Shown one piece after another: positions 36,701 to 45,700 of a stretch of DNA of 64,000 bases. Each line of letters opens with the position of its first letter. Position 1 is the stretch's first letter. The notes beneath the pieces were generated by a model. It worked only from the letters and a program-made list of their open reading frames with translations, was not told the origin of the DNA and searched no databases. The stretch covers positions 11,966,001 through 12,030,000 of the forward strand of contig NC_047072.1 of assembly GCF_902459465.1 (NCBI RefSeq). Direction: 5' to 3'. Both the position numbers and the translations under genes were made by a program. This stretch comes from Asterias rubens (Eukaryota).

Positions 36701-39700
36701 ACAAATAGCATCGGGATAAAACCAAAATTAATATTCTCAATCCTTGATGTTCAAAATGTCCACAGATTTACATTAAACTTACAGGGTTTGAAGATAATAA
36801 TAGTGGGAAGCTTCCCTTCAAATATTACTAACTGAGGTTGTGTAGTTTTTGAGAAATGAGTAAAACAAGTCACAAAATAGTTTTGGTCTCATGAGACCAA
36901 AATTATTTTAGCATGTAAAATCCCCTTAACCAGTTATGATATTATACCAAACTATAGCATAACTGGTTAATACATTTTTACATGCTGAAACTGAGACGAA
37001 AATTATTACTTTTACTCATTTCTCAAAAACTACAGCACCTCAGTAAGTAAAATTTCAAGGGAAGCTTTCTACTATCATAATTTTCAAGCTGTGTAAGTTT
37101 AATGTAAATTTGTGGACATTGTGTTTTTTGTTAGGAAAAAGTACATATACCCTTTAAAGACAGTGGACACTATTGGTAACTGTCAAAGACCAGTCTTCTC
37201 ACTTGGTGTATCTCAACATATGCATGAAATAACAAACCTGTGAAAATTTGAGCTCAATTGGTCGTCGAAGTTGCGAGATAATAATGAAAGAAAAAACACC
37301 CTTGTCACACAAAGTTGTGTGCATTTAGATGGTTAATTTCGAGACCTCAAGTTCTAAACTTGAGGTCTCGAAATCAAATTCGTGGAAAATTACTTCTTTC
37401 TCGAAAACTACTCCACTTCAGAGGGAGCCGTTTCTCACAATGTTTTATACTACCAACCTCTCCCCATTTCTCGTTACCAAGTAAAGTTTCGTGCTAATAA
37501 TTATTTTGAGTAATTACAAATAGTGTCCACTGCCTTTCAGAAGCTATGATCTTATACTTTTTACTTATTAAAACAATTATTTTTAATTTTAAATTTGCAT
37601 TGCTTACACCATGGATACAGAACATCATTTATGTTTTACCCAGACACTGATGTGTGTTCAGCACTGTACATAAAATAAAAATAAAACATAGGATTCAAAC
37701 TGCCTCTTGCCACTTGGCAAGCTCAGTGGTCCAGTGATAAGGCATCTTATAATTTCTAAAGCCCGGTTCATACTTCCTGCCAGCGAATGCGAAACAAATG
37801 TTGACGTCACAAATTCGCAACGAAAAGTTTGCAGCAGTTGCCCTCCGTTCAACTCACTCGCGAATATCGCTGCGAAAGGAGGGTTGTGACGTCAAATTCA
37901 CGTCAAAATTGCTTCGCATTCGCATTCACAGGAAGTATGAACCGGGTTTAAGGCTAAAAAAATGGGACGAAAATGAACTGCGAATTGTACAAAATTGATG
38001 ACCTATGACATATATGTAGGCCATTAGGGTGGATCTGCTTGGGTGCTATAATTGTGGCACTTTCTTGACTATAAGCCTGGACAATGCTGAAAGGTAAAGT
38101 ACTTTGTAGTAAAGGGTGGTACCAGTGTATTGTGAGTGGTTACAGTGGCTTCATCAGCGCTAAGCAAAATTACCTGAGGACGTAAGCGTGGAGATCATCT
38201 CGACACTTCTCACTCACTATCTCACAATGAACCAAACCAAGCAGTTCAACGAGGCGTTCCCTGGAGATCAAAATAAAACATTATATTGATAATGACATAT
38301 TATGTAAAGCGCATAATGCAAAAGCCTCTAAGCGCATAAAGAGAACAATAAAATATACATCGAGTGAAAGATACAATAAAAAATAGGCAGATTACAAATA
38401 AGCAGCTTCAAACAAATGAGTTTTTAACAGAGACATACACAAACAGTGTAATGAACTACATGTAGCCTCTTGAATATGCACAGAGAGACTGAAAAACAGA
38501 CATTTGAAAATTGATAATATACACAGAATTCAAAAAAAAAATTAACAGCAACGTCTTGTGAAGGTTCTAAACTTATTTATCACAACACTTAAACCACCCT
38601 TCAAGGGGCAGTATGTAAGAGTATGATCATCAATTTCTTAAAGGGCCAAGTACCTGGACTCGAGTAACTTACATGTAGGTCAGGTGTCTCATTTGAAATT
38701 ACTGGAAGTAACCATTTAGAGTGGCCTTAAATGGAGCTTGCATATATAACTGATTTCCAAAGCTTCTCACAGACTTTACACTTGATGTGTACTTAAAGAC
38801 AGTGGACACTATTGACAATTGTCAAAGACTAGCCTTCACAGTTGGTGTATCTCAACATATGCATAAAATAACTAACCTGTGAAAATTTGAGCTCAATCTG
38901 TCATCGAAGTTGCGAGATAATTATGAAAGAAAAAACACCCTTGTCACACAAAGTTGTGTGCGTTCAGATGGTTGATTTCGAGACCTCAAGTTCTAAATCT
39001 GAGGTCTCGAAATCAAATTCGTGGAAAATTACTTCTTTCTCGAAAACTATGGCACTTCAGAGGGAGCCGTTTCTAACAATGTTTTATACCATCAACCTCT
39101 CCCTATTACTCGTCACCAGGAAAGGTTTTATGCTAATAATTATTTTGAGTAATTTCAAATAGTGTCCACTGCCTTTAAGAAAGCCAAGATTTCTGTGTTT
39201 GACATACTTGCGGTTTTCATTTTTACACAAGACCAGTTCTAGAGTATTTCTGCCAAGAATGGCACACTTCAATACGCAAGGAGCAAAATAATTTTTTAGA
39301 ACGAGCCCTTCATACTATTTTAGGCTATGGATGTGTATTATCTATTCACTATGGCGTGGCGTGTCGTGGCCGAGCGGTTAACAGCACTGGATTCAAGCTC
39401 TGGTGTTTGATCAGCAGGGTGTGGGTTTGAATCCCTGTCGTGACACTTGCTATGTAAAATTGGGGAGGTAGTGCTTTCTGCTCTACCGGCCAGGCTTCGG
39501 ACTGATAGTACCCAAGCCTACATCCGTATGGACTGTAAAAGGGGTAACCCTGTTTTAGCCCTAGGAGTAGGTGGCAAAGGCCTCTGGAATAAAATCATTG
39601 TAGCCCACACCTTGAAGTGGCCTTCCGGCCTTGTTTGTCTGGCGACTTGCATAAAAAATAATATAAAAAAAAACTATTTAAAAAAATATGCTCTTACTAG

Positions 39701-39949
39701 TCTCAATATTCCCACTTTAGAATCTTGACGTCATCCGTTAATCAAGTTTGGTAATAGTCTTTGGTTCATCACTTACTACCTCCGGAGAGAAGTAAATTAA
39801 ACTAACCTGGGAATGGCTTTCAGGTCGTGGGTAACCTTATCGGGGATGTCACTCTTGCCCGAGGGCTCAAACCAAATTTCAAGAAGTTTCTCCGTACCCT
39901 CGTAGTGTGTCAGCTCACTCCCCGTGTCACGCATCCCAGAAAGGTCCAT
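27714..39949 (-). CDS. AMD1: S-adenosylmethionine decarboxylase proenzyme (340 aa). Exons 39949-39807, 38260-38174, 36591-36468, 35305-35203, 34833-34791, 34241-34187, 33523-33443, 31918-31826, 30283-30209, 28548-28468, 27851-27714
   Basis: Exon lengths sum to 1023 nt in one open frame. Motifs [21 protein letters not shown] (pyruvoyl self-cleavage site, E78/S79), [47 protein letters not shown]. Confidence 0.96.
28052..28432 (+). mobile_element. Kolobok-type MITE, family A
   Basis: TTAA flanks; near-identical to other family A copies; in AMD1 last intron. Confidence 0.85.
28640..29235. mobile_element. Kolobok-type MITE, family G, with an inserted poly(A)-tailed fragment (about 28800-29025)
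   Basis: TTAA|AGGGTCTATGTACTTTTTGTAGGACAAAAAACACAATGTCCACAGATTTACATTAAACTTACA and its inverted copy at the far end. Confidence 0.75.
29625..30028 (+). mobile_element. Kolobok-type MITE, family A variant
   Basis: TTAA flanks; same termini, different internal palindrome block. Confidence 0.75.
31965..32540 (-). mobile_element. Probable L2/SINE 3' fragment in an AMD1 intron
   Basis: Minus strand ends with GTAAAGCACCTTGGGAG..GCTCTAAATAAAT..(TTA)n, an L2-type tail; body unassigned. Confidence 0.45.
32546..32956 (+). mobile_element. Kolobok-type MITE, family A
   Basis: TTAA flanks; internal segment 32645-32690 resembles the family core in the opposite orientation. Confidence 0.8.
33059..33349 (-). 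repeat. Interspersed repeat with internal tRNA-like core and TTAAATTTGCATC direct repeats
   Basis: B box GGTTCGAATCC and oligo-T on minus. Other copies near 31490-31670, 36615-36735, 37585-37735, 46788-46900, 55090-55280 and 60955-61080. Confidence 0.7.
33524..34186 (-). other. AMD1: U12-type (minor spliceosome) AT-AC intron in AMD1, 663 nt, phase 0
   Basis: 5' site ATATCCTTT at 34186-34178, branch-like CCTTGAC at 33543-33537, 3' end TTTGCAC. Splicing joins PDQTLE to ILMTNLDP; unspliced read-through stops 8 codons into the intron. Confidence 0.93.
35618..36017. mobile_element. hAT-like MITE with 8-bp TSD TTGGTACC
   Basis: TIR TAAGCTTGGGC(A/G)ATATC; subterminal CGATAT repeats; TSD at 35610-35617 and 36018-36025. 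Confidence 0.85.
36760..37153. mobile_element. Kolobok-type MITE, family G
   Basis: Right end ...AAAAGTACATATACCCT|TTAA, with the TTAA shared by the adjacent family A copy. Confidence 0.7.
37158..37535 (+). mobile_element. Kolobok-type MITE, family A
   Basis: Starts at the TTAA shared with the preceding element; right TSD reads TTCA. Confidence 0.85.
37760..37947. mobile_element. PIF/Harbinger-like MITE, family H
   Basis: TIR AGCCCGGTTCATACTTCCTG / CAGGAAGTATGAACCGGGT; TAA and TTA flanks. Partial copy near 51855-51916. Confidence 0.75.
38797..39174 (+). mobile_element. Kolobok-type MITE, family A
   Basis: TTAA flanks and family TIR. Confidence 0.85.
39359..39675 (+). mobile_element. tRNA-derived SINE with LINE-homologous 3' tail and poly(A)
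   Basis: A box TGGCCGAGCGG, B-box-like GGTTTGAATCC, central block GGACTGTAAAAGGGGTAACCCTG, tail TGTAGCCC..GACTTGCATAAAAA. Headless reverse copy at 51256-51482; diverged copy at 63720-64000. Confidence 0.8.
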
Positions 39950-39957
39950 CTTGGCAT
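39910..39957 (-). other. Overlapping upstream ORF of AMD1, [15 protein letters not shown]
   Basis: ATG 8 nt upstream of the main ATG, out of frame, stop TGA at 39912-39910 inside the AMD1 CDS. The ORF is seen in the sequence; its translation is not demonstrated. Confidence 0.6.
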
Positions 39958-40234
39958 GACAGGGGGCGCTCTCTCCACAGGGTGTTTAGGCAACGCCGTG
40001 ATGAAAATTCTGTCTGAGAGAACGAGGTCAAACTGTTTTTTAAATAATTGCATTTTTTTCTCTAAAGGTGTAAAGGATTGGTAGAGTTGACAAAAATAAT
40101 CAAAGTTATCCTGTTTTTGGGGATCAACCATACATGAAATAACAAACTTGTAACAGTTTTGAAATAATCTGCTGTGAGAGTCGAGGCACTGTAAAGATGG
40201 AACATCAAGTTAGAAGTGGTACAATTCTGTTACA

Positions 40235-40613
40235 AGACAGTGTACACTATTGGTAATTGTCAAAGACCAGTCTTCTCACTTGGTGTATCTCAACATATGC
40301 ATAAAATAACAAACCTGTGAAAATTTGAGCTCGATCGGTCGTCGGAGTTGCGAGATAACTATGAAAGAAAAAAACACCCGTCTCACACGAAACTGTGTGC
40401 ATTTAGATGCTTGATTTCGAGACCTCAAGTTCTAAACTTGAGGTCTCAAAATCAAATTTGTGGAAAATTACTTCTTTCTCCAAAACTACATCACTTCAGA
40501 GGGAGCCGTTTCTCATAATGTTTTATACTATCAACCTCTCCCCATTACTCGTTATCAAGTAAGGTTTGATGACAATAATTATTTTGAGTAATTACCAATA
40601 GTGTCCACTGCCT
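40235..40613 (+). mobile_element. Kolobok-type MITE, family A
   Basis: Family TIRs; right TTAA intact. Confidence 0.85.
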
Positions 40614-40720
40614 TTAAGGGCATGTACCAGTGCTTCGCTTCGTTTTTGAATCAGCAAGGGCACCTTAGTAAAGGGTAAGGGTTGAATTTACATTTTACAG
40701 AAAGAAATGGTTCTATTTAA

Positions 40721-41084
40721 AGCCATTGGAGACTTTCGGTAAACAGTATTGTCCAAAGGCCCACACTTCATGTATCACAACTTATATATAAAATAACAAA
40801 CCTGTGAAAATTTAGGCTCAACCGGTCATCGGAGTCGGGAAAAAATTTCGGGAAAACCAACCATTGTTTCCGCACGCTCGCCGTGTCATGACATGTGTTT
40901 AAAATAAATCCATAATTCTCGATATCGAGAATTGATAATTGGTTTAATGTTTTCTCAAAAAGTAAAGCATTTCATGGAATAATACTTCAAAAGAAGTCTT
41001 TCGCCATTACCTTCTGTAAACACTGTAAGTTATTTGTAAATTTGTGAACTTTTTTTGTTTCTGTTCCGAAAATGTGCAATGGCT
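40721..41084. mobile_element. Kolobok-type MITE, family B
   Basis: TTAA flanks; homologous to 2643-3010 in opposite orientation. Confidence 0.8.
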
Positions 41085-41519
41085 TTAAAATTTATGACCA
41101 CATAGGGCCTAATCAGTAGTCTTTCAGACTAAAATTAAACATTGATGTTTGTTATTCCCCTGAATCCTGTATTTTTTATATCAAAGGCACCTTGGCCAAC
41201 AGATTTGGAGCAGTATTCAAGGTGAGCAGATGAATTGCTGTGTCACATAGTTCATGGCAAGCTTTTAAAAGCGAATACCTTCATACAATTTGGAATGAAT
41301 GATTTACCAGGGCACCTAGGTCTGTTCATTTGGGATGGGCTATACATACAAGGTGTCATGGCCGAGCGGTTTAGAGCCTTAATCTCAAGTTCTGATTGTT
41401 CAGTCAAACACTGGTTATTTTCAGAACACTTCTCAAAATGAGATTTTCACATGGTGAAAAACCTGACCTAGTTTTCTAGGCCTATACATAGTTCAGTCCT
41501 ATTCGTTATTGTATTTTAA

Positions 41520-42700
41520 AGGGTCTATGTACTTTTTGTAGGACAAAAAACACAATGTCACAGATTCACATAAACTTACACCGTTTGAAGATAACGATAG
41601 TAGAAAGCTTCCCTGAAAATATTACTTGCTGAGGTGCTGTAGTTTTTGGGAAATTAGTAAAACAATGTCAAAAAATAATTTTCGTCTCATTGATCATGAG
41701 ACGAAAATTAATTTAGCATGTAAAAACGTATTTTCATTACATTTTTTTACTCATTTCTCAAAAACTACAGCACCTCAGCAACTAATATTTAAAGGTATGC
41801 TTTCTACTATCATTAGCGAGGTTTCGCAACGTACGGATACACATACAGATACCGATACGTCGACACTTTGTGTGTTTACGTGACGCGTATCCGCGACTCC
41901 CGTATTTTGCATACACGTTACCAACTGATACGGGAGCTCATACATGTCGTAGAAAAACGGATACTGTTTTGCAGACGTTAAGCTGTATTTTTGTCCCAGA
42001 TGAAAAACATTTTCCAGGGAATTATTTACACTGGTATCGTGCTTGCTATAGACAGAAAATTGTTAGTCATTTGCAAGCAAAACGATGAAAAAGTGCAGTG
42101 TATAAAACCATGATAAAACACAGGGTCTCTAACGGTCATGTTTGTCAGAAAAACACTCATGATGAATGCGAGCGCACTCAAGTGAAACATTTACCTATAG
42201 TTTGCCAAACAAAATCCAACACTCGGCTGGCGTGAATGGATACGGTTATCATATCCGTATCTGTATCTGTATCCGTACGCTTGCGAAACCTCTCTAATAT
42301 CTTCAAATGGTGTAAGTAGAATGTGAATCTAAGGACATTGTGTTTCAAATGTGTTTCAAAAAGTACCCGGATCCTTTTCAAGGATTTACATTAAACTTAC
42401 AGCGTTTGCTTCCCTTCAAATATTACTAACTGATGTTCTGTAGTTTTTGAGAAATGTAAAATCCCAATAACCAGTTATGATTTTATATCATAACCATAGC
42501 ATAACTGGTTAATACGTTTTTTACATGCTAAAACTGAGACGAAAATTATTTGTTTTAACTCATTTCTCAAAAACTACAGCACCTCAGTAAGTAAAATTTC
42601 AAGGGAAGCTTTCTACTATCATAATCTTCAAACTGTGCAAGTTTAATGTAAATCTGTGGACCTTGTGTTTTGTGTTAGGAAAAAGTACATAATATACCCT
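41520..42700. mobile_element. Cluster of family G Kolobok-type MITEs with a nested TAG...CTA (hAT-like) element at about 41815-42295
   Basis: Family G termini at 41520 and 42700. Nested TIR TAGCGAGGTTTCGCAACGTACGGATAC / GTATCCGTACGCTTGCGAAACCTCTCTA interrupts the family G sequence. Confidence 0.7.
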
Positions 42701-42921
42701 TTAAGGTGAATAGGGCTGTATTATGTACTGTGTGTCAGAGTATTGTTGTGTTAGGCTCATTGACTCCATGCCCAAAATAGAATTCTTTCAGACCCAAGCA
42801 GTGCTGTAGCCAGACCATTTTTAGTGGTAGGCGCTAGTCTAAATCAAATTTAGTCCACTGAGGGCGAGCGGGTCAACAAAATTATTTTGATATTGTTTTG
42901 ATATGGGGGCCATCATTTTGC

Positions 42922-43568
42922 GGTCCTACTAAAAGCCGACAACTCGCCGACAACGCCGACAACAAGTCCAGAGCGCCGACAACTCGCCGCCAACAAGTTT
43001 TAATTACCTCAAAAATGGCCAATAAACCATAGATGTATTAGAACTATATGTGTTCTGTAATATAAACATAAAGTTAATGGAAAAACTTCACAAAAAGTGT
43101 GAATTTTTAACCAGAAAAAAACTTCACTTGCACGAAAAGCGGTCGGACGCCATCTTGGCTTAAAAAACGTGTTTGGACCAGACCATTATGATACGGGTAG
43201 ATTTAGCACTTGTCAACAACAGAGGGCGGGCTTCATGTGAAGACCTTCACTGCAGTGTGCACAGTGCATGACGCCCGCCCTCTATTGCTAAGTCTGACTC
43301 ACCCGCATCGTAATGGACTGGTCCGAACACGATTTTAAGCCAAGATGGCGTCCGACCGTTTTCCGTGAACGTTTCTGGTTAAAAATTCACACTTTTCGTG
43401 AAGTTTTTCCATTAAATTTATGATTATATTACAGAACACATATAGTTCTAATACATCTATGGTATATTGGCAATTTTCGAGGTAATTAAAACTTGTTGGC
43501 GGCGAGTTGTCGGCGCTCTGGACTTGTTGTCGGCGTTGTCGGCGAGTTGTCGGCTTTTAGTAGGACCC
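42922..43568. mobile_element. Foldback (Mutator-like) element, almost entirely palindromic, 9-bp TSD TCATTTTGC
   Basis: About 300-bp inverted arms with GCCGACAAC subrepeats; direct repeat at 42913-42921 and 43569-43577. Confidence 0.8.
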
Positions 43569-43994
43569 TCATTTTGCTGTGCAATCTGGGGGAAATCTGT
43601 GCTGGCTGGGAAGCACAGTGTATTCTGCTCAGAGTGCTCGGTAAAATTTGTTAGTTCTTGGCAGGTCTGCCTAGCACCGCCCATCGTGGCTACAACACTG
43701 GACCCAAGTACCTTTGTATATAGTGGCCCTGCTGAAGGGACATTCAAACAATACACTGTACTGCATATTTACATGAAAACCAAGTGAATATTCACGGTTT
43801 TCGCCCTGAATCGCAAAAATTCACTTAAATATTCACATGAATATTTGCAATTTAAGCCACAATCGCAAATATTAACATAAATATTAACGTAAAAAATTTT
43901 GATGTGTGCCCCAACAAATCACAAATATTCACATAAACCACAATCGCAAATATTAACATAAATATTATTATTAATATTAGCGTAAACAATTTTG

Positions 43995-44127
43995 GGAAAA
44001 GTTTCCGTATGGTGCCACCACTTTTTCATTCGATATGAAATAATATAGTATCTAATTTACCTCAATGAGATATCCCTTTTTCTAAAAAATGAGTGAAAAA
44101 GTGGTGGCGCCATACGGAAAGTTATCC
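43995..44127. mobile_element. GG...CC MITE with 8-bp TSD CAATTTTG, inserted in a CAATCGCAAATATTCACATAAA tandem tract (about 43800-44175)
   Basis: Exact TSD at 43987-43994 and 44128-44135. Further copies at 44380-44501 and 45911-46050 without a clean TSD. Confidence 0.85.
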
Positions 44128-44679
44128 CAATTTTGATGTGTGCCCCAACAAATCGCAAATATTCACATAAATAATTGTGATTTGTGCTCCCCACTCAATC
44201 AAGCGTATAAATAAAGAAAACAATCTCACCAACTGCACCAACCAATCAGTAATCCACAGTTTAATTTTGACAAACAAATTAAAAATTGTCATGCCCTTGG
44301 CCTTGTCATGCTTGTGAAACAAGAAAAAGTAGGCCTACGCCCCCCCCCCCCCCCCCTATGCAAAAAATACAAATCGTCTGGAAAAGTTTCCGGATGGCGC
44401 CACCACTTTTTCATTCGATATGAAATAATATAGTATCTAATTTACCTCAATGAGAATCCCTTTTTGTAAAAAAAGTGGTGGCGCCATACGGAAAGTTATC
44501 CAAAAAAATATCCTACTCCAAACCACAGCTTCATTGATAGAGTAGAGGATGGAGGACGGAAATGAATGGATCACCTTTGGAGGTAGAATTCTATTTCGAC
44601 CTCGGGATCGCCAAGATAAAATTACAAGAATCAGGATGGCATGTCAAAATTGTCAGTCATTTGGTAAGAAAATACTCAC

Positions 44680-44900
44680 GTAAAACAGCAAACGAAACAG
44701 AATTCAATGATGAGTGAGGAAACCGTATAAAAAAATTGTAATGCCGTATACGACAAGTAGATACTCAGTAACTTTAAAAGAGTAAAAGCCAGTTAGAATA
44801 AAACTTATGTTGTTCCAATCCAAGCTGCTTGCCCTAGAGCAGCGCAGCGCATGTGTGTGTGTGGTGTGACGAGTTAGCAGTCGAAAGCATTCATTTACCG
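44680..44900 (-). other. AMD1: Putative non-coding first exon of AMD1
   Basis: Strong donor GTGAGTAT at 44679-44672 on minus, next to a CpG-rich promoter-like region. Matching acceptor TTCTCTCAG at 40014 (alternative at 40010). TSS uncertain. Confidence 0.55.
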
Positions 44901-45700
44901 TGTGTGTACGGTGTGTGACGGATATGTAACAGCGCCCTCTGGCAACCAATTATAAGCGCGCTTTCAACAAAAATAGAAAACGACGGGAAATGCGCATTAA
45001 AGATGGTCCAGCAAATTTCACGCATTTCTATATTGCGCGAACTTCTGAGTACCCACTGTTGATTATTCAGTGATATTTTATTTAAATGATGGTCGTGTGT
45101 GATGTTTGACGAAAGTCTATAGCTCCTCAAACTTCATCACATTTCCAGCGATCCTGTCACCTTAAAAAGTTGAGGGCGCTTGTCCTTTTTAGCAGAAGGT
45201 CATGTCCCGAACGTGTTTATATAGTGAGGAAATTTACAAGGTACTTGGCACCAGACTAAGTAAGGTAATAATTGCCCGTTTTCGAAATTACGGCTTTACC
45301 TGGGAGTCACCTCAGGCTCCGCCGGATATTCTGAAGATGCACGCTTATCTTGCGGGGCTTCAAGCATGCAGACGAATACCAAGCAAAAGCCAAAGCCGAG
45401 TGTTAGCCGTAGTTTCGAAAAGTGTTTATGCATTGCACCAAAACATTGATGTTGACCGATGACGCACAGTCACGATAGGGATTGTTTTTTGTTGCTATAA
45501 TGACATCATTTCTTAGCTCGAAAAGAACGATTTAAAAACTCATTTATACGAATCGGTAAGTAACAGTAACAAGGACAATTGTTATATTTTATTTTAAATT
45601 GTTGCATAAGTTGTTAAGTTATTTAGATCTTCAATTTCAATAAAAGTACAATTTCTTCCTGCTTTTGTGTTTTTGTTTCTCGATCAGCTCAGCTGTGTGT
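44900..45700. promoter_or_regulatory. Head-to-head promoter region between AMD1 and CHMP1B
   Basis: CpG-enriched segment under 1 kb between the inferred AMD1 leader exon and the CHMP1B leader; GAGGGCGCT-type motifs at 44931 and 45171. Confidence 0.55.

Follow-up and report, generated by a model that had tools for sequence, protein, structure and literature searches.

A stretch of 64,000 nt from Asterias rubens (contig NC_047072.1 of assembly GCF_902459465.1, positions 11,966,001 to 12,030,000 of the forward strand), here called the window and numbered from its first letter, contains on its minus strand the AMD1 gene, encoding S-adenosylmethionine decarboxylase. The AMD1 mRNA carries a short upstream open reading frame (uORF) that begins 8 nt ahead of the enzyme start codon and ends inside the enzyme coding sequence (CDS). 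Taken as a whole, the explanation that we favour, with reasonable but by no means full confidence, is that this is a translated, cis-acting overlapping uORF (uoORF) of the AMD1 mRNA, ancestral to echinoderms, the end of which would act at termination. AMD1 catalyses the committed, rate-limiting step toward spermidine and spermine, and uORF-mediated feedback on its translation is a classic example from vertebrates and plants; to our knowledge, AMD1 uORF control is little documented in invertebrate deuterostomes. A full-text literature search for AMD1/AdoMetDC uORFs in sea urchin, Strongylocentrotus and echinoderms retrieved nothing relevant, and no echinoderm uORF paper based on ribosome profiling was found.

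The two overlapping reading frames are arranged as follows.

39910..39957, minus strand: uoORF, with its ATG at 39957-39955, 15 codons and its TGA at 39912-39910, in the +1 frame relative to AMD1
39947..39949, minus strand: AMD1 main start codon, in the strong context aagATGg, which matches the first residue of P0366, the A. rubens protein

The minus strand across both start codons reads gtcATGccaagATGg and bears out the initial annotation, made on the letters of the window, in placing an upstream ATG (uATG; uAUG in the mRNA) of weaker context 8 nt ahead of the main one. The main ORF is AMD1, as the exon peptides match S-adenosylmethionine decarboxylase, fitting P0366 better than the A. amurensis protein; the coding exons run on the minus strand from 39949 down to approximately 27717. 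Specifically, the uORF TGA is placed 37 nt into the CDS, past both in-frame Met codons of the enzyme, Met1 and Met6, as had been described. Owing to the out-of-frame overlap with the AMD1 start, initiation at the uATG excludes enzyme synthesis, which supports the earlier claim that ribosomes starting there yield no full enzyme. An Rfam scan of 38000-42000 gave zero matches.

The uATG is a genuine part of the mature AMD1 mRNA. Contigs of four public runs were placed on 39700-45699 to derive the transcript structure, including the untranslated region at its 5' end (5'-UTR).

39807..40013, minus strand: exon 2, comprising 64 nt of leader and the first coding part (RNA contigs X8 record 17, spanning 39806-40013, X5 record 9 and X2 record 1)
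40014..44679, minus strand: 5'-UTR intron, GTGAGT...CAG, 4.67 kb, repeat-rich
44680..44861 at least, minus strand: exon 1, non-coding leader (RNA contigs reach 44842 in X8 and 44861 in X5)

A 1294-nt contig from an organism-A run of unrecorded library type (X8 record 17) joins 39806-40013 straight to 44680-44842; therefore, the AMD1 leader is divided by the intron 40014-44679. This contig, together with the GT..AG borders of the intron, confirms the leader-exon edge predicted at 40013. The frame of the uORF, described earlier as open upstream across the leader exon, is indeed open through exon 2 and into exon 1. Another contig (X2 record 1) ends at 40009, its other 89 nt fitting exon 1, and indicates an alternative acceptor 4 nt downstream (cag/acag/), with exon 2 starting at 40009. 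The two acceptors lie in window 40009-40015. For both Asterias species NCBI reports two transcript variants encoding one protein. Counted from 44842, the spliced leader is 227 nt long and its sole upstream ATG is the one at -8; this depletion of AUGs is not significant (1 observed vs 3.5 expected, P=0.11).

Echinoderm AMD1 proteins were found by homology searches, and their genomic or transcript loci were then compared, together with one contig of a metagenome collection. Of two pattern scans of metagenomes, the first was empty and the second returned one echinoderm contig and four bacterial chance matches. Counting A. rubens, 12 sequences that cover all five echinoderm classes carry a +1-frame ATG at -8.

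Asteroidea: A. rubens, A. amurensis, Patiria miniata, Acanthaster planci and a close Asterias relative (organism C)
Ophiuroidea: Amphiura filiformis and a second, brittle-star-like contig (L015)
Echinoidea: Lytechinus variegatus, Diadema setosum and a sea-urchin transcript (L010/L011, two contigs that both contain the uORF)
Holothuroidea: Holothuria leucospilota
Crinoidea: Antedon mediterranea

The initial annotation had proposed leader alignment across echinoderms and hemichordates as a check, and the outcome is that the uATG and its frame are kept in all five echinoderm classes, while the hemichordate sample, which is one locus (Glandiceps talaboti, L009), lacks an ATG at -8. The anchored alignment of nine echinoderm species shows the uATG and the C following it to be invariant, compared with only 1 of the 23 flanking leader columns; therefore, the uATG is kept by more than chance. 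In organism C the ATG persists despite two changes in the spacer. The context of the uAUG shows a purine at -3 and a C at +4 in every case, and that of the main AUG nearly always an A at -3 and a G at +4. Starfish have a uORF of 15 codons, the crinoid one of 16, and brittle stars and sea urchins one of 17. In these four classes the uORF stop is always UGA-C, provided by the main-frame codons Leu/Val-Thr directly ahead of the conserved HYEGTEK.

Within the overlap, substitutions in asteroids and echinoids follow the uORF frame rather than the enzyme frame. From the main ATG to the uORF stop, the third-position phase of the uORF is the first-position phase of the enzyme. Among asteroids, 8 of the 12 sites in this phase are variable vs 6 of 22 in the other phases (Fisher p=0.036); the corresponding echinoid values are 7/14 and 5/26 (Fisher p=0.07), and those of the two classes pooled 15/26 and 11/48 (Fisher p=0.005). 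Past the uORF stop, variable sites shift to the third position of the enzyme (11/28 vs 1/56, p=1e-5). By the Nei-Gojobori method (NG86), the ratio of non-synonymous to synonymous rates (dN/dS) in the overlap is about 0.1-0.2 in the uORF frame and >1 in the main frame for all six within-class asteroid and echinoid pairs, and in the next 20 enzyme codons it is normal (0.05-0.2). Taking the pairs together, 21 codon differences in the uORF frame are synonymous and 16 non-synonymous; the enzyme frame has 2 and 39, respectively. The effect is clearly evident on comparing Lytechinus with Diadema, in which the seven uORF codons at the end read STMRAVS-stop in both species through four synonymous changes, AGG to CGT among them, and the same nucleotides encode VNNEGSKL and VNDACGQL, respectively, in the enzyme frame.

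In addition, the enzyme codons ACA CAC TAC that follow the uORF stop (window 39901-39909) show no synonymous variation in eight sequences of three classes (the window and L001-L003, L005, L007, L008 and L010), and the nine codons after them vary at most synonymous sites. This invariance may hint at a constrained termination context. RNA structure was considered as a cause of the conservation and rejected: the single-sequence fold has a z of -1.18, and the consensus fold of the four asteroids is essentially devoid of covariation.

In conclusion, the substitution data point to purifying selection on the uORF peptide in asteroids and echinoids, and the pattern in the overlap is, at the level of sequence comparison, the signature of a translated ORF whose peptide would outweigh the first dozen residues of the enzyme. 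That the uORF is real and selected is accordingly a claim we make with high confidence.

Several observations weigh against this interpretation, or limit its reach. The initial annotation had named peptide conservation as a check, and the ophiuroid pair does not share the selection found in the two other classes: no frame is preferred (dN/dS of 0.48/0.10 in the uORF frame and 0.35/0.58 in the main frame), only MPR... and ...GAVS-stop are common to both peptides, and the pooled p becomes 0.06 once these two are included. Translation is deduced from substitution patterns over 12-14 codons and three species per class, the species within each trio are not independent, and the stretches are short. 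The uORFs of sea cucumbers have a different end and, because the enzyme of these animals begins right at HYEGTEK, extend to 33-36 codons. A stichopodid sea-cucumber transcript (L012) has its +1-frame ATG at -11 from the annotated start and none at -8, whereas both ATGs occur in H. leucospilota. The crinoid uORF ends in TR-stop, not in VS-stop. Finally, some leaders contain other upstream AUGs, such as the candidate uORF1 of Asterias described below and short uORFs in the urchin transcript, so that the uoORF is not always the first AUG.

These data allow a mechanism to be proposed. Scanning ribosomes would encounter the uAUG in a usable, imperfect context, with the strong main AUG 8 nt further on. 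Those that start at the uAUG would translate 15-17 codons of the +1 frame until they reach a UGA lying 37-43 nt inside the AMD1 CDS, where they terminate. Since they cannot return and make no enzyme, the uAUG would divert a set share of initiations from AMD1, its medium context allowing some 40S subunits to pass on to the strong main AUG; ribosomes that reinitiated beyond it would yield a proenzyme lacking the N-terminal part. Closely spaced AUGs are described as competing because the 40S subunit moves locally in both directions (Matsuda and Dreher 2006, as cited in PMC12415969), and two AUGs 8 nt apart should compete locally because the scanning complex moves both ways. Repression of AMD1 in cis by the uORF is, in our opinion, probable.

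A second component of the proposed mechanism concerns termination. In asteroids and echinoids the selection on the peptide is strongest at its end, R-G/A-V/A-S-stop, encoded by AGC UGA CA. From this selected C-terminus and from its fixed distance we infer that the nascent peptide may act on its own ribosome as it terminates. If a ribosome were held at the UGA, it would cover roughly +22 to +50 and so sit about one ribosome length downstream of both starts; it would block early elongation on the main ORF, and queuing would put the next ribosome or scanning complex over both start codons. Such a peptide-dependent stall is put forward tentatively, at slightly less than an even chance. By analogy with vertebrate MAGDIS (PMC7038982) and the plant small uORF (PMC2811004), both of which act through the nascent peptide as translation terminates, the stall could be tuned by polyamines so as to provide feedback, as one would expect of this enzyme, and we regard polyamine responsiveness as possible, with somewhat greater reserve. 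Moreover, the stop of the uORF precedes the exon 2/3 junction by about 100 nt, a distance above 50 nt, and termination there could make the mRNA subject to nonsense-mediated decay as well. The most elaborate version of the proposal would make the element an echinoderm polyamine sensor, namely a MAGDIS-like termination-arrest peptide whose stop lies inside the AMD1 CDS, so that one arrested ribosome would impede early elongation on the main ORF and, by queuing, occlude or re-bias two starts 8 nt apart. Such a sensor would have an origin separate from those of the vertebrate and plant devices, date back to the echinoderm ancestor and have shaped the N-terminus of the enzyme, where the Leu/Val-Thr codons supply the UGA. 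This version is speculative, and we think it rather unlikely to hold in full.

The frame of the uORF extends further upstream in starfish, where one short block stands out.

39991..40005, minus strand: 15-nt block TTCATCACGGCGTTG that hardly varies among four asteroids, at the 5' end of exon 2

The block includes, in frame with the uORF, an ACG (39999-39997) that has A at -3 and G at +4. Over -56 to -9, the +1 frame is the only one open in all four asteroids, and the extension peptide that it would encode follows the pattern F-I/T-TAL, three variable residues, P-V-E/A-R-x-P-P, with synonymous changes at Val (gtg/gtc/gtt), Arg (aga/cgg) and Pro (ccc/cca); organism C adds a synonymous gcg-to-gcc change. 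The coding signature is weak both in dN/dS (0.18-0.69) and in phase (9/16, 6/16 and 7/16), and no counterpart was found in the brittle star, the crinoid, the sea cucumber or the sea urchins, the last having in-frame stops 7-15 codons upstream and no Pro-Pro. Thus, of the extension with near-cognate codons and a Pro-Pro pair that the initial annotation had suggested, the open frame, the Pro-Pro and an ACG stand in asteroids; its signal is weak there, and it is absent from the other classes.

Four other explanations have to be weighed against a translated uoORF acting at termination. The simplest is a constitutive damper based on leaky scanning, in which only the uAUG, its context and the 8-nt spacing matter, with neither peptide stall nor polyamine sensing. 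The features invariant across classes are indeed nucleotide-level ones (the ATG, the C at +4 and the 5-nt spacer), the peptide sequence varies between classes, the brittle-star pair lacks uORF-frame selection, the uORFs of sea cucumbers have another length and another end, and the bidirectional 40S movement noted above (as cited in PMC12415969) would suit such a damper. What it does not account for is the frame-specific selection on the peptide, which appears independently in asteroids and echinoids with a main-frame dN/dS >1 in the same nucleotides, nor the retention of uORF length and stop position in four classes; we consider the damper unlikely. An element resembling the uCC of AZIN1 and ODC mRNAs could be added to the AUG uORF in starfish, with a near-cognate start (e.g. 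the ACG at 39999-39997) and a Pro-Pro pausing in an eIF5A- or polyamine-dependent manner. The asteroid frame that is open over -56 to -9, its peptide kept through synonymous changes (that of organism C included) at dN/dS 0.18-0.69, and the nearly invariant block with its ACG in A(-3)/G(+4) context are in its favour; given the weak phase signal, the lack of a counterpart in sea urchins, brittle star, crinoid and sea cucumber, and the position of the block at the 5' end of an exon, where it could be a splicing enhancer instead, this element seems improbable.

Amino-acid-level selection in two classes would also be expected if the product of 15-17 residues were a functional micropeptide acting in trans, with AMD1 repression being incidental. 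The product is very short, has no recognisable motif and differs strongly between classes, and its position relative to the main AUG is fixed, which fits a role in cis and argues against a micropeptide; we hold this to be very improbable. The least credible of all is that the uATG has no function, surviving by chance or through a DNA-level or Kozak-context constraint, or else that AMD1 is made from the uAUG by an antizyme-like programmed frameshift. Only the small sample size speaks for absence of function, against which stand an ATG invariant in five classes amid variable flanks and a three-periodic selection in the uORF frame. As to the frameshift, antizyme belongs to the same pathway and shifts at a UGA (PMC2811004). 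A shift that leaves the uORF for the main frame must be -1, while that of antizyme is +1, a +1 shift at the uORF stop meets stops within about 10 codons, and the main AUG with its strong context is conserved; a frameshift was therefore rejected. A translated uoORF acting in cis, with its end engaged at termination, remains the explanation that we prefer.

The 5' part of the gene deserves some further comment. Exon 1 was identified solely through the RNA contigs and is conserved in A. amurensis; the search for it by conservation failed, only exon 2 (-56 to +147) aligning among Asterias, Patiria and Acanthaster. The 5' end of the AMD1 transcript is upstream of 44842, since contigs reach 44861 (a sister-species contig, X5 record 16, covers 44747-44861) and half of the sampled words of 44843-44932 are present in several organism-A runs of unrecorded library type. 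This region contains an additional candidate uORF.

44805..44852, minus strand: candidate cap-proximal uORF1 (MRCAALGQAAWIGTT-stop), 15 codons, in exon 1 and inside the X5 contig 44747-44861

The candidate uORF1 is retained in A. amurensis with one I-to-V change, and would be on the mRNA only if transcription begins upstream of 44852. Further upstream, a TATAA-like box is conserved between the two Asterias species (window 44895-44955 vs L001:6720-6745), with a 27-nt indel lying between the box and exon 1; the ATGs at 44896 and 44892 would enter the leader if transcription began at the usual distance from this box. The segment 43000-43560 was rejected as a promoter, its rise in GC content reflecting a long inverted repeat of foldback type, the arms of which carry GCCGACAAC-type short repeats. 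An attempt to bound the intergenic region found no match in the window for the kinase that neighbours the gene in Patiria. The repeats of the 5'-UTR intron (40100-41100, 41500-41900 and 42500-42700) reach summed contig depths of 10^5-10^7 in all four runs and have the appearance of a SINE- or MITE-like family of very high abundance, a related copy of which lies in the next intron (38887-39270).

Upstream ATGs of other kinds were noted in two of the compared leaders. In Glandiceps (L009:9960-10003), a +1-frame ATG of weak context about 38 nt upstream would, if retained in the mRNA, give a 46-codon overlap with the start; between this ATG and the main one there is a possible acceptor (ttcag). 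In the stichopodid transcript (L012:250-310), the sequence at -48, ATGCCAAATGG, is similar to ATGCCAAGATGG of Asterias with one base removed; its first ATG is in the enzyme frame, a possible longer N-terminus, and its second opens a 7-codon ORF.

The arrangement depicted here is distinct in that the competing AUGs are 8 nt apart and termination falls within the CDS. If it proves polyamine-responsive, it would represent a third, independently evolved design of polyamine sensing on one enzyme. It also provides a clean natural case of dual coding in which the short ORF, and not the enzyme, would dictate the sequence, and for annotation it implies that an overlapping frame constrains the first 12-15 residues of the enzyme in echinoderms. 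Sea urchin and sea star embryos are tractable by mRNA injection and by treatment with DFMO or spermidine, and the element could become a model for the choice between nearby AUGs and for termination controlled by a nascent peptide.

The comparison with known systems starts from MAGDIS, which stalls at termination in a polyamine-dependent manner and whose end, Ile-Ser(AGC)-stop, is loosely similar to the echinoderm Val/Ala-Ser(AGC)-stop. This resemblance qualifies the initial annotation, which had called the element unlike MAGDIS; the statement stands for sequence, position and length. The two share the gene and a short uORF whose translation blocks the enzyme, and by analogy a likely action at termination. 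Polyamine-responsive AMD1 uORFs are established in vertebrates and plants (PMC2811004; PMC7038982). MAGDIS has 6 codons, with Asp4 and Ile5 critical, and is located 14 nt from the cap, far upstream of and separate from the main AUG (PMC2811004), whereas the echinoderm uORF, of 15-17 codons, begins only 8 nt ahead of the main AUG, ends in the CDS and contains no Asp-Ile or GDIS; in A. rubens 219 nt or more of the RNA contig precede its start, which is thus not cap-proximal as that of MAGDIS is. MAGDIS is active despite long N-terminal extensions, and the change I5L abolishes its activity (PMC7038982); this tolerance makes a longer echinoderm peptide with an active end plausible. Homology of the echinoderm uORF to MAGDIS is not shown.

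The pair of overlapping tiny and small uORFs of plant SAMDC is similar in combining a uORF encoding a conserved peptide with two very close starts of unequal strength (PMC2811004). In plants, however, both competing AUGs belong to uORFs upstream of the main ORF, and the small uORF has 48-55 codons and ends in Pro-Ser; in echinoderms a single short uORF, with Val or Ala rather than proline as penultimate residue, competes directly with the AUG of the enzyme. Predicted uORFs of vertebrate spermine synthase and SSAT overlap the main start, that of SSAT in the +1 frame, and exclude translation of the main ORF (PMC2811004). They belong to other genes, are longer, start at least 70 nt upstream and form no 8-nt AUG pair, and selection on the peptide inside the overlap is not reported for them (Ivanov, Atkins and Michael 2010, PMC2811004). 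Their architecture is nevertheless the nearest to that of echinoderms.

The uCC of AZIN1 and ODC mRNAs has a near-cognate start and a Pro-Pro-Trp pause that leads to ribosome queuing. It is comparable as an element of polyamine-pathway leaders in which a paused ribosome and its queue alter start use, and starfish alone have Pro-Pro and a well-placed ACG; the echinoderm element differs in starting at an AUG, in overlapping the main ORF and in lacking PPW or a Pro-Ser end. With uORF2 of ATF4, an overlap described together with ribosome queuing (PMC11058473), it shares an out-of-frame arrangement in which events inside the overlap influence the main AUG; the ATF4 system differs in relying on reinitiation after uORF1 and on eIF2 phosphorylation, with a long overlap and distant starts. 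Metazoan AdoMetDC uORFs do exist, and all except those of vertebrates and sea squirt have a penultimate proline (PMC2811004); with its penultimate Val or Ala, the echinoderm uORF seems to fall outside that set, as represented in the main text of that source. In conclusion, the echinoderm uORF resembles by analogy the known AMD1 uORFs in the way it would work, but belongs to neither the MAGDIS family nor the plant dual-uORF family.

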